NCBI GenBank assembly: GCA_964035545.1
Contig: OZ037773.1
Span: forward strand, 5,361,751-5,425,750
Length of the DNA: 64,000 nucleotides
Direction of reading: 5' to 3'
Origin: Bugula neritina
Taxonomy: Eukaryota; Animalia; Bryozoa
The position numbers and the translations under genes were made by a program. The notes beneath the pieces are model-generated. The model made no database searches and was not told where the DNA came from. It saw only the letters and a list, made by a program, of their open reading frames with translations. Shown here in pieces: positions 13,255 through 63,449 of this stretch (position 1 is its first letter; the number at the start of each line of letters is the position of its first letter).

Positions 13255-16200
13255 ATGGCAAGTGCTTTAGCAGGCCCGTCATCCATGGACATTGACCATG
13301 CACAATATCAAAGGTACTTAAGATTTCAAGACATTTCTAGCAACTACCGGTCTTGGGTTTTATACACTTTTTAGTTTCTATATACAGATGTTAACTATGC
13401 CCTTATGTAATATCTTAACATGTATGTTTTCTGACCTTGGTAATACTATATTTTGCAGTAGATGCTGAATAATAACATTATTTTTTAAACTTTGATCATC
13501 TATAAAATAAGATTTTTAATCTTATTTTAACCTGACACATTAACTTGCTAACATCTAATTTTAGTATCTCATCCACTTCCTTTATGACTGATGATTTCAA
13601 TGAGAGACCCAAGTTTATTAATGCAGCTAGACTAAAGAAGCTCTACGGCTGTGCCATTTGTAATGATGTCGTTGTTCAGCCCCACCAAACCCCTTGTGGT
13701 AACAGGTAAATACTTTTTTTGGCTTTTCTTGCTACATATAATTTTATTGCTTCATACAGGTTTTTAAGTACATTTTGACAGTGCACAGGTAAGCTGTTGG
13801 GTTTTATCATTTCAAAACACAAGAAGTTTGGAATTACCCCATAAATATACTCTCTGAATCATAGCTAACTCTGTATTATGTTGTTAGATGTAACAATTAC
13901 TGTCAAAAAAAGAAAGCTTCTCTGTTCAACATCAGGAGGTCAAAGTTCACCATTGGTGTGTAGCTGGAGTGTATTTTGGTATTCGGTTAATTTCTACAGA
14001 GTATGTAAGAAATGCATTGAGGAAAAGTTTGGCAGCCTGTCTGTTATCAAATGCCCCCTCCCTCACGATGACATGGATGAGGAAGAGTTGAAAGAAGAAC
14101 AGTGTCAGCAAGAAGGCCTTGTCAGAGATGCTGTCGTACCAGATCCAGGAAGTCAGCGATTCCTTCTTAAAGAGAAATGTTTTTGTGAGAATCAAGAGTA
14201 CGGCTGTTGTGAGAATCCGCCATGGAAAAAGCTTAAAGTATGTTGAAATATTTTTCTTTAGAAACTCAAAGTACATTTTCTAGTTTGTTTTTCAGCGTTC
14301 TATTCTGAATAAGACCTTTAGCTAGCTTCTACTAGAAATGGTAGATATGTACATGAGATTAGTTTGTATGTTAATTTCAATATATATTTGTTGAGCTCAC
14401 AAATATATTGTAAACTACTTTGTTGAAGCATTTTCCAGTTACGCTTTTAGCTAGTCATGTTCCTAAGGCTTATATCGATATTAGTTATAAAAGGTTTTCT
14501 TATGTCCTTTATGCAGAGTAAAATGTACTTCATTCTAAAGAAGGAATTAAGCTCTCTTCTCTCCTATAGAAATGAGAAATCAATGTACACTTTCAGTCAT
14601 CTAATTATTAGTAAGCATCGTGTGATTACAGACTAGTTGTATGTCTATTATGTATACAATTATGTCTTTCAGCTAAGTGTTTCAAACCTTAATTCCAATA
14701 CAACGTATAATAAACATGCTTTTCATATGCTAGAAAATGATTGTAAAATGTATTCTGTGTTAGGAACATCAGGCCATTTGTGTCTTTGTACCTGACCGAT
14801 GTCCAAATCAAGGCTGTTACAAACTATTTGCCAAGAAAGACCTTCAACGTCACACAGCAGAGTGTGAATTTGGCATCGTGAAATGTAACTTCTGTCAACA
14901 ATCCTTCAAGCGGAAAGACATGGAGGTATGCATGATGAGTGCTGGGTGGAAACTAATCAAAATTTAATAATTAAAATATTTGTTGCTTATAGGAGAGTCT
15001 GTAATAGCAAGTTGTGTATACACGAATCATCTGTTGCTTTGTGACTTTCCAGCTGATTGGTTACATGGAACTGCCGTTGTAGTTGATTGATTACTTTTAT
15101 CTTTGTATAACAATACAAATATACCTACGTACTGCCTGGTCACATGATCAAAGAAACTGATTTGTAGGAACACCTGGGAGAGTGTGACTATGCTGACTCT
15201 GAGTGTACCATATGTGGCACCAAGTTTGAGAAAAGAAAACAGGTAACTTTACTAAATATTCAAATTAATAATCTTGTCTAACATTAATTTTGAAAGTTGC
15301 TCTGTAACTCACTATTTAGTATGTGTTAAGTTATGTGTGTTTAGTCATTAAGAATGTAAGTGTGGTGTGTGCATGCTTGTATGTGTATAACATATATAAT
15401 TTGTTGTTGTTTCAGAGTTTGACCCCGAATGATTTTTACATATAATAGTGTCTGTTACTTTCCTTATTGCAATCTTTTTGTCTTACAGCTTATAGTCCAC
15501 CAGAAGACTAACCCAGAATGTCTACGAACTCCTGGAAAGTGCTACTTCTTTGAATACTGTCACTTTGAATCTGACAAGCTGAATGAGCTGAAGGCTCATC
15601 TTAAAAGCACAACTAGCAAACATTTGGAGGCCCTCGCTGTCCGAGTTCATGAGCTGGAGAATGTCTCCACCAAGTCTAAAGATATGGTGAGTAGATGTGT
15701 TAATGACCTTGACATCAGTAAGAGTCTTGGTGAATAACCTTATGAGCTGTCATGAATGTTGCTATTTGTGAGCGGCTGGAATGTCAATACTGTAACTATT
15801 TATCTGGGAAATACTGTAAACATACTTTCCACAAAATGTGGCTGAAATACCTCGGCTATCAGCTCTTATACCAGCTAGGTGCATGACATCGAGGTGTGCT
15901 AGCATTTCTGTAGGTATGCATTATATTTTGCGGAGTAATTATTATATATTAATTTTTCTCCACCCTCTATAATGACTCGTACTTACAGGCTCACTGACAC
16001 CTTATTGCAGGTGGGCTTATAGGTGAGTGTATTTTGCTGAGGCTAGTGATATTATCATGTTATAGTGTCTAACTTTTCTACAATGATTCATAAACTCATA
16101 CATCTCTCGTTGCAAGTATGCCTACTCACTGAACACTCATTACTATCACATTGTATCATCTCATCATTGCAGGCAGGTTTTGGTGTGATATCTCTCAAAG

Positions 16201-62600: not shown

Positions 62601-63449
62601 GACTTAATTGACGTGCTGCAAAATTTTTGAGGCTTTTGCAAATCAAAGTAACAAGTTATCTAATTTAATTTTGAGCACCTACAGCAAGAATTTTTGTCTG
62701 GTACATCACTTAGCCTAAAACTTATATAGCTACTGACTTGACTTGACTTTTACTCATGTCGGCTTTCAAGTTGAAGTATTGAGTTTTAACAATTAAAATC
62801 AGATTTAAAAAGTAACAACTTTCACCCCAACACTTTAGAGTGTAGAAGGGTTTAAAACTTCTGAAACTTTTGAAACTAACCATGAAGTCACACACAAAAT
62901 ATAGAGGCACGCTTAACTGTTTAAACAATTTCGTACCTACATTTTACACCCCAATAATAAGGCAAGATTTACACCTCACACTTAACAGCTACGATGACTT
63001 CTTATGTAAAACATTTTTGTTTTCTTTCAATAATCCGTAGAGAGGTGAGGTAGAGGAATGATTGTAACTTCAAGTTGTTTCATTTGATTAACAAATTTTA
63101 TTCAAATTGATTGAATTCTACTGCAAAATTCAAAGTTAATAGTTTGTGTCAAATACTAAGGATTAAGCACTTTATGTGATATAAAGGTCATAAGTTATTT
63201 ACGTTGTGCTCCTCTAATGCTGCTGGCATACAGCTTAGCCTCAGTGCCTACCATCACCCTTGTTATTTCTTCATCAAACAGGCTTATCTTAATGGACATG
63301 AAGGTGGCAGAGGCCAGTATCTCAGTCTTTACTTCGTCTTGATGAGAAGCGAATTTGATGACATTCTCGAGTTTCCATTCAATCAGAGGATCACTTTCAA
63401 GTTGTTGGCTCCACAAAGGTGGTGGTTAAACAAAGAAGAGACGATTTTG
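56679..63449 (+). CDS. TRAF: TRAF (TRAF-D), partial, last MATH exon outside the window. Exons: 56679-56794, 57691-57907, 58386-58547, 59279-59353, 59818-60006, 60688-60741, 61123-61303, 61916-61998, 62161-62310, 63282-63449
   Basis: In-frame spliced ORF: MKLDKRPDFV..CGICRDIVVLAYQTACNKQVCEVC..CPFLH, zinc fingers, 181- and 83-nt coiled-coil exons, MATH (DNGMYVWKIDKY..YGYKMCCKAYLNGHEG..LSLYFVLMRSEFDDILEFPFNQRITF). Start codon inferred (in-frame TGA at 56646). Confidence 0.9.
57909..58200. repeat. 44-bp minisatellite starting at a TRAF-D donor site
   Basis: TGAGTT(G/A)CAATGA(C/T)ATCTTCAATGCTACTTCTG.TATACACAAT units at 57909, 57953, 57997 and onward, ~7 copies. Confidence 0.9.

Follow-up and report, generated by a model that had tools for sequence, protein, structure and literature searches.

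Why does a bryozoan carry four genes for TRAF adaptor proteins in a row, and do they make up an immune-signalling unit of their own or the local part of an older family? The genes, here called A, B, C and D, lie in a 64,000-nucleotide stretch of the Bugula neritina genome (the window: C9:5361751-5425750 of the 216 Mb assembly GCA_964035545.1, C9 being contig OZ037773.1), which is AT-rich at about 31% GC. We consider it likely, with considerable confidence, that all four are intact members of a bryozoan-specific, fast-diverged TRAF3-like offshoot that arose by old tandem duplications, that gene conversion has kept the last MATH exons of A and C, and exon 11 of D, alike, and that purifying selection acts on all four. 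An earlier note, made from the letters of the window, had taken the array for a lineage-specific and functionally partitioned adaptor module, and the evidence set out below supports part of that picture.

The window contains four TRAF genes on its plus strand, with open spliced frames and with intron positions and phases common to all paralogues, just as the note had described (Table 1). GT-AG is found at every intron, and exon lengths agree from gene to gene (for example 198, 181, 83, 150 and 168 nt). The models come from plus-strand stop-to-stop open reading frames, which fall into four TRAF-like exon series; splice sites were set by the open frame, GT-AG and agreement across paralogues. The product of gene A has a degenerate RING and then five zinc fingers of TRAF type, a putative coiled coil (exons 7-8) and a MATH domain (exons 9-11); the repeat-rich intron 8 of the gene measures 10.6 kb. 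The downstream exons of C are identical or nearly identical in length to those of A (238, 162, 78, 198, 181, 83, 150, 168 and 168 nt), and the first exon of B, at 95 nt, equals that of A. The span first proposed for the array, 13255-63449, starts correctly at the ATG of A but stops at the end of the tenth exon of D, which runs on to 64378; the last exon of D falls just past the window and was taken from the genome sequence.

Searches exon by exon in Pfam and the PDB confirm that these are TRAF genes. The Pfam model PF21355 matches exons 9-11 of A at 34.8, 55.4 and 37.5 bits, and in a six-frame search of the whole genome its matches above cut-off fall on the MATH exons of all four genes. In the PDB the best match of the three MATH exons is TRAF3 (E = 1e-18, 7e-14 and 2e-10), and similarity by exon falls in the order TRAF3, TRAF5, TRAF2, TRAF4, with TRAF6 far weaker. 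For the zinc fingers, exon 4 passes the PF02176 cut-off in A (34.2 bits) and in C (36.5 bits); the zinc-finger exons of B and D are singly below it, and a four-way alignment shows all their Cys/His positions kept. Exons 7-8 are homologous in A, C and D, where they encode 88 residues free of proline that match generic coiled-coil Pfam families weakly.

To what kind of TRAF do these genes belong? A profile of the four exon-10 peptides, run against 1.84 billion representative proteins, led to full-length matches, the closest of which are Bugula neritina TRAF3 and the TRAF3-like and TRAF5-like proteins of Watersipora subatra. One B. neritina TRAF3 (P0157) is 96% identical to A and up to 60% identical to C over aligned columns. 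A second (P0017, KAF6023532.1) is the orthologue of D, at 76% identity by BLASTP and collinear with it at 77-92% nucleotide identity. The Watersipora protein P0018 is 54% identical to A and 51% to C by BLASTP, and eight further paralogues lie on the same 66.6 Mb chromosome. These B. neritina and Watersipora predictions (KAF6023532.1; XP_067938629.1 and eight others on one chromosome) are orthologues or co-orthologues of the array genes and have the same derived motifs described below. They are automatic annotations, and the draft assembly has gaps of a single base that distort the models P0017 and P0157. Such gaps, in short homopolymer-like runs, affect exon 6 of the genes orthologous to A and D (L026:14635-14831 and L005:9071-9258); they are probably assembly errors, and they account for the local mismatch of the deposited P0157 and P0017 models with ours.

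In a maximum-likelihood tree of 43 full-length sequences, 18 of them bryozoan and 25 not, all the bryozoan sequences form one clade with 100/100 support and a long stem, nested among lophotrochozoan TRAF3-like proteins (95/93). It also falls inside a TRAF3/5 group (99/97), and TRAF2-like sequences form a different clade. A tree of the N-terminal parts, which avoids the converted MATH exons, returns the same bryozoan clade at 100/100. In NCBI some Watersipora homologues go by 'TRAF3-like' and others by 'TRAF5-like', as one might expect if each of the four genes were orthologous to a separate ancient type of TRAF (TRAF2, TRAF3, TRAF5 and so on) and they were adjacent by chance, but we regard this as extremely improbable, given the single clade within TRAF3-like proteins and a set of derived characters that its members share and that is absent from every other TRAF examined. 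The paralogues thus do not scatter over separate ancient clades, and because of this the one-family reading of the note stands. Within the clade A pairs with P0157, A' (a near-copy of A outside the window) with P0164, and D with P0017, and seven Watersipora paralogues group together as sister to the A group. Forcing all Bugula genes into one clade costs 20 log-likelihood units in an approximately unbiased (AU) test (p = 0.051), and is neither accepted nor rejected; part of the duplications are probably older than the split of Bugula and Watersipora.

Regular expressions and alignment served to screen the 43 sequences for the derived characters. Throughout Bugula and Watersipora the members have lost the RING His, having N, S, K, R or G instead, and have FPF for WPF in the MATH domain. 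The fifth zinc finger, GKCY(F/Y) in A-D and GKC(Y/F/H/W)(F/Y)(F/Y) across Bugula and Watersipora, is without the usual G before its third Cys. Among the 25 non-bryozoan sequences 23 have CGH, one sponge has CGD and one gave no match to the expression, and WPF is found in all that matched. The earlier note had seen the three traits in A-D, where they are real, and had tied them to the array; since all B. neritina and W. subatra homologues have them as well, they are synapomorphies of a bryozoan subfamily and not of this locus. A 474-residue sequence from a Logan assembly (P0027) falls in the bryozoan clade and combines a canonical CGHR with FPF and GKCWWY; it may be an intermediate state, or its source may be a bryozoan that branches off more deeply.

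The loss of the His bears on what the N-terminal half of these proteins can do. A canonical C3HC3(C/D) RING with its Cys-x-His pair is absent from A-D, which read CGN, CGS, CGK and CNK at this point. RING Pfam models align to the first half of the domain, and they stay below cut-off for the B. neritina orthologues of A (P0157: zf-C3HC4 19.8 vs a cut-off of 21) and D (P0017: TRAF3_RING 15.5 vs 26.9). The region has a conserved CP(L/M/F)xHDD motif, and after it come an acidic insertion and a Cys that is likewise conserved; B has Arg in place of the His of this motif. We hypothesize that the CPxPHDD His stands in for the lost zinc ligand. That the zinc-binding His is missing in every member suggests that the proteins of the subfamily are probably scaffolds, or carry a rewired zinc site, rather than canonical RING E3 ligases.

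The array is one part of a larger family. The six-frame PF21355 search of the whole genome gives about a dozen TRAF-type MATH loci, and six genes of the same subfamily lie on C9: A-D and, 260-300 kb upstream of the window, A' and E, both of which bear converted MATH exons. Intron 8 of A' is only about 1.2 kb long; E has a shortened coiled coil, and no homologue of exon 5 was found in it. The other loci are three tandem genes and a further one on C8, two on C1 and one on C6; wherever an N-terminal exon was matched they read CGHR, and their MATH domains have WPF, or WPI on C6. The C8 genes are a second, TRAF3-like cluster, three within 50 kb and one more, and may be the canonical TRAF3 orthologues of this genome: WPF is kept, the serine finger is SSS in two of the three clustered genes and SPS in the third, and the one RING match reads CGHR.

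How old are the duplications? Synonymous differences between paralogues (pS) reach 0.7-0.9, that is saturation, in all exon blocks but exons 10-11 for A-C and exon 11 for A-D and C-D, where the synonymous divergence (dS) is 0.14 (A-C, exon 10), 0.37 (A-C, exon 11), 0.25 (A-D, exon 11) and 0.21 (C-D, exon 11). This saturation means that the duplications are old, much older than the split of the two Bugula genomes (orthologue dS about 0.2). The single local expansion of the note therefore holds insofar as A-D are paralogues from one TRAF3-like ancestor, but the saturation argues against one recent local event, and the family has six members rather than four.

The young-looking exons are instead the mark of gene conversion. 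A tract of A that takes in MATH exon 10, intron 10 and exon 11 is 95% identical at the nucleotide level to its counterpart in C, intron included, 94% to that of E and 89% to that of A'; overall the block is 92-97% identical in DNA among A, A', C and E. Gene D shares a shorter block of 251 nt (intron 10 and exon 11), 95-97% identical to A, C and E, with D 64116-64366 matching the 3' 251 nt of the A tract at 95%. Outside the tracts identity drops, to 74% for exon 9 of A vs C and 72% for exon 10 of C vs D. Intron 10 itself is 92-97% identical across the converted copies, and because it is as conserved as the flanking exons, gene conversion has been at work and not only selection. B takes no part in this exchange. 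In the receptor-peptide site, the serine finger and a large share of the hydrophobic pocket are encoded by the converted exons; in the RING, the zinc fingers and the coiled-coil region, divergence between paralogues has reached saturation.

A second Bugula genome allows selection and synteny to be followed. Draft contigs of B. neritina (GCA_010799875.2) run collinearly with the window, their nucleotide identity to it being 77-93%: one carries eIF3k, A and the sequence up to just before B, and another the end of C, D and beyond. By this collinearity the two genomes are those of close relatives and the array is conserved between them, with the orders eIF3k-A and C-D kept. We projected the exons of A and D onto these contigs, set aside the two single-base draft gaps, and compared the ratio of non-synonymous to synonymous divergence (dN/dS) with 1 by Fisher's test. 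All internal acceptors and donors of A and D are conserved; the sites without a match are the exon-1 donor of A, for which no mapped position was obtained, and the starts and ends of the genes, where no splicing takes place. Gene A has dS 0.20, dN 0.010 and dN/dS 0.05 (p = 3e-29), and D has dS 0.23, dN 0.069 and dN/dS 0.30 (p = 5e-11), with a similar ratio in all four of its domain blocks. For B, the comparison used exons 9 and 10 from a 1.7 kb Joint Genome Institute (JGI) metagenome contig and exon 1 from a B. neritina contig; of the differences in these 138 codons, 27 are synonymous and 3 non-synonymous (dN/dS 0.02, p = 3e-18). Two metagenome scans for orthologues of the RING exon and the zinc-finger-5 exon of B found none. 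Within the species, a DNA run has seven variants in B exons, one of them R to K and the other six synonymous. All four genes are held by purifying selection.

The values for B and D, both well below 1, also decide against neutral evolution of these two genes, which the note had named as something that would undo its reading. One could picture B and/or D as decaying or neutrally drifting duplicates, unprocessed pseudogenes with frames that chance has so far left open. In all trees the longest branch is that of B (1.6-2.2), a gene short of two exons, and D evolves six times faster than A at non-synonymous sites. But the frames are open over about 447 (B) and 499 (D) codons at 31% GC, dN/dS is far below 1 in both, 6/7 of the exonic variants of B are synonymous, and splice sites are kept in the sibling Bugula genome, so that this possibility is largely refuted and very improbable.

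Several points weigh against our account of an old, constrained bryozoan offshoot. The order of duplications relative to the Bugula/Watersipora split rests on the AU value of p = 0.051. With a bryozoan stem of 1.5-1.8 substitutions per site, the placement of the clade next to any exact sister group is uncertain, and a tree of the MATH domain by itself puts the bryozoan clade and the canonical TRAF3-like C8 cluster in one unresolved polytomy. The orthologue data cover 138 of the roughly 447 codons of B, and for C the converted exons only. Finally, the splice from exon 6 to exon 9 of B, the first exons of C and D, and transcription are predictions from the sequence.

Do the four genes differ in what they could bind? 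Hot spots for peptide binding in TRAF2 are the hydrophobic residues F410, L432, F447, F456 and C469, the serine triad S453-455, and the polar residues R393 and Y395 (PMC6125299). We mapped the pocket by the offsets of PDB 1CA9 (TRAF2 310-501) in three exon searches and a four-way alignment, and use TRAF2 numbering throughout. A and C are identical to TRAF2 at R393, Y395, D399, F410, F447, S453-455 (SSS), F456 and C469, differ at L432, which is F in all four genes, and keep S467; apart from L432F they thus have the Px(Q/E)E pocket of TRAF2/3 type, in line with the note, which had called them canonical-pocket adaptors. D keeps Y395, SSS, F456 and C469 and is without this pocket, owing to R393K, D399H, F410Y and F447I; its serine finger is of the A/C type because its exon 11 is a converted copy. 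With its polar pocket changed (R393K, D399H) and the homologous exons 7-8 present, D is indeed an altered-pocket full-length form. B keeps R393, Y395 and D399, and the pocket is lost through S453E, S454A, S455A, F456S, C469I, F447L and F410Y.

B also differs in its architecture. Its exon 6 has 198 nt and the phase found in A and C, and it would be joined in phase 0 directly to the first MATH exon, across a junction predicted from the sequence. The intron that stands in place of the two coiled-coil exons shows no homology to exons 7/8 of A, C or D, and tblastn with exons 7 and 8 of C finds no match between 38686 and 39944. Omission of both exons keeps the frame, leaving a linker of about 30 residues with two Pro and two Gly. 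The description of B as coiled-coil-less holds as far as the missing exon 7-8 homologues go, but it is incomplete, for the serine finger is lost too (SSSF to EAAS).

The gene models, the phylogeny and the selection are observed; on this footing binding, oligomeric state, E3 activity and expression can be predicted. By analogy with TRAF2/3/5, A and C would be trimeric adaptors that dock on Px(Q/E)E-type motifs of TNFR- and TLR-pathway proteins (PMC6125299). D would also be a coiled-coil form, and its altered polar pocket suggests a probable shift in preference for the residue that follows the core motif and is read by R393/D399. B would probably be non-trimerising and bind a different ligand, rather than act as a simple decoy for the ligands of A and C.

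The last point matters for the idea that the locus is an activator/modulator module, in which A and C signal, D and B tune or antagonise the same receptors, and the set evolved here as one unit. There are real structural differences to build on (B without its coiled-coil exons, D with R393K and D399H), purifying selection acts on all four genes, and conversion has kept the receptor-binding exons of A, C and D alike, which fits competition for the same docking sites. If B were such a competitor, one would expect it to retain the peptide site, but it has lost the serine finger and F456 and is therefore unlikely to compete for an A/C ligand. Nor is the array a closed unit, with A' and E elsewhere on the chromosome, and the duplications are old and the traits bryozoan-wide. 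We find the module idea doubtful for these reasons and favour the reading of an old bryozoan offshoot with converted MATH exons. A further synthesis, which we offer tentatively and think rather improbable as a whole, would be a cheilostome TRAF3-derived subfamily with a rewired RING, where the CPxPHDD His beside the acidic insertion replaces the lost His; continuing conversion would keep the docking half-domain in common while the effector halves diverge, giving adaptors on the same receptor tails with different outputs, and B would be monomeric and outside the shared specificity.

How do these proteins compare with known TRAFs? Vertebrate and invertebrate TRAF3 and TRAF5, with their domains likewise ordered from RING through five zinc fingers and a coiled coil, putative in the bryozoan proteins, to MATH, are the nearest by PDB match and tree; unlike them, the subfamily has its RING His replaced, FPF, an altered fifth zinc finger and an acidic insertion after CPxPHDD. 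TRAF1 is a RING-less modulator of TRAF2 that shares its MATH pocket and acts through hetero-oligomers, having lost the RING and most zinc fingers. It is a precedent for adaptors with a non-catalytic N-terminus, since members of the bryozoan subfamily, too, are predicted to be without a working RING; unlike in TRAF1, a RING-like fold and all zinc fingers are retained and constrained here. Oyster and amphioxus are well-known cases of TRAF expansion within a lineage. The Pacific oyster, for example, has 15 TRAFs, some in tandem pairs (PMC4346834). The Bugula genes resemble the oyster ones in local duplication and high similarity within the taxon, and differ in belonging to one divergent TRAF3-like subfamily found in at least two cheilostome lineages, with exon-limited conversion and one member without a coiled coil. 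Partly tandem, lineage-specific TRAF expansion was therefore already known, and orthologues of these genes stand in GenBank as automatic predictions. What is less ordinary is a RING without its His across a whole clade, gene conversion limited to certain exons, and a constrained paralogue lacking both coiled coil and serine finger.

To our knowledge, bryozoan innate immunity is almost undescribed, and our literature search found no paper on bryozoan TRAFs. Current understanding is not overturned by these genes, but they add to it. Besides canonical TRAFs, bryozoans possess another TRAF3-like lineage, which is strongly modified and has expanded independently in Bugula and Watersipora. Similarity of the peptide-binding exons between paralogues, next to divergence in the RING, zinc-finger and coiled-coil parts, suggests diversification of outputs without loss of receptors. 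The RING without its His is under strong constraint, as seen from a dN/dS of 0.07 for the RING and first zinc-finger exons of A, and so provides a natural test case for the role of a TRAF3-type RING.

Table 1. Features of the TRAF array, related loci and repeats. Positions are those of the window unless a contig is named.
Feature	Position	Strand	Remarks
Gene A	13255..29659	+	11 coding exons, 552 aa; open spliced frame, GT-AG, Pfam zf-TRAF and TRAF-mep_MATH
Exons of A	13255-13349, 13565-13705, 14000-14237, 14764-14925, 15168-15242, 15489-15686, 16792-16972, 17604-17686, 28310-28459, 29235-29402, 29492-29659	+	
Conversion tract of A	29226..29647	+	MATH exon 10, intron 10, exon 11
Gene B	35415..41538	+	9 coding exons, about 447 aa; RING-like domain, zinc fingers, MATH; without exon 7-8 homologues
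Exons of B	35415-35509, 35823-35945, 36637-36862, 37871-38035, 38202-38273, 38489-38686, 39944-40096, 40711-40878, 41395-41538	+	exon 6 is 38489-38686, first MATH exon 39944-40096
Intron of B in place of two coiled-coil exons	38687..39943	+	1257 nt; CA/CG-rich microsatellite at about 38810-39200
Gene C	45573..51414	+	A-like full-length architecture; ten certain exons; candidate first coding exon at 43937-43989
Exons of C	43937-43989 (candidate), 45573-45692, 46128-46365, 47167-47328, 47502-47579, 48154-48351, 48989-49169, 49710-49792, 50401-50550, 50990-51157, 51247-51414	+	
Conversion tract of C	50981..51402	+	MATH exon 10, intron 10, exon 11
Gene D	56679 to window end 64000 (last exon beyond it)	+	full-length architecture; ATG start inside exon-2 homologue
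Exons of D	56679-56794, 57691-57907, 58386-58547, 59279-59353, 59818-60006, 61123-61303, 61916-61998, 62161-62310, 63282-63449, 64220-64378 (last)	+	
A'	C9:5073085-5080000	-	near-copy of A; exons 87-100% identical to those of A at protein level
E	C9:5107307-5113000	-	RING exons about 75-80% identical to those of A, MATH about 92-94%
Second TRAF3-like cluster	C8:10026000-10076000 and C8:8396686-8397472		three genes within 50 kb and one more
eIF3k	about 2400-6589	-	upstream of A
Inverted repeat	18755-19649 and 20735-21629		A intron 8; about 895 bp, 98% identical
Minisatellite-like tandem array	22679-23290		A intron 8
Reverse-transcriptase-like open reading frame fragments	24879-25740		A intron 8
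Dispersed repeat upstream of A and D	12163-12780 and 54979-55551		about 600 bp, 79% identical
Element in D intron 10	63518-63684		about 167 bp

The neighbour of the array, eIF3k, was identified from sub-threshold PF10075 matches of two of its exons together with the annotated orthologue in the B. neritina contig; the six-frame Pfam search of the genome did not recover it. The sequence upstream of A and that upstream of D resemble each other and were considered as a shared promoter, a candidate that we rejected, as the similarity belongs to a repeat dispersed over the genome, for which at least 450 candidate copies were counted.

The long intron 8 of A contains an inverted repeat, and the B. 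neritina contig skips from window position 18545 to 21627, from which it follows that this 3 kb element is an insertion missing from the sibling genome. Further on lies a minisatellite-like tandem array, which the B. neritina contig has as well, though not in the same number of copies, and fragments of open reading frames with a reverse-transcriptase-like FADD motif were recognised by eye; they matched no Pfam family at E up to 0.1. Intron 10 of D carries an element resembling a short interspersed nuclear element (SINE) or a miniature inverted-repeat transposable element (MITE), with more than 2000 candidate copies at 85-90% identity on all chromosomes. In the sibling, intron 9 of B has a 345-bp insertion (JGI contig L027:631-975) that matches repeats on C6 and C8 at 87-93%, and these matches mark it as a mobile element that has been active after the separation of the two Bugula lineages.

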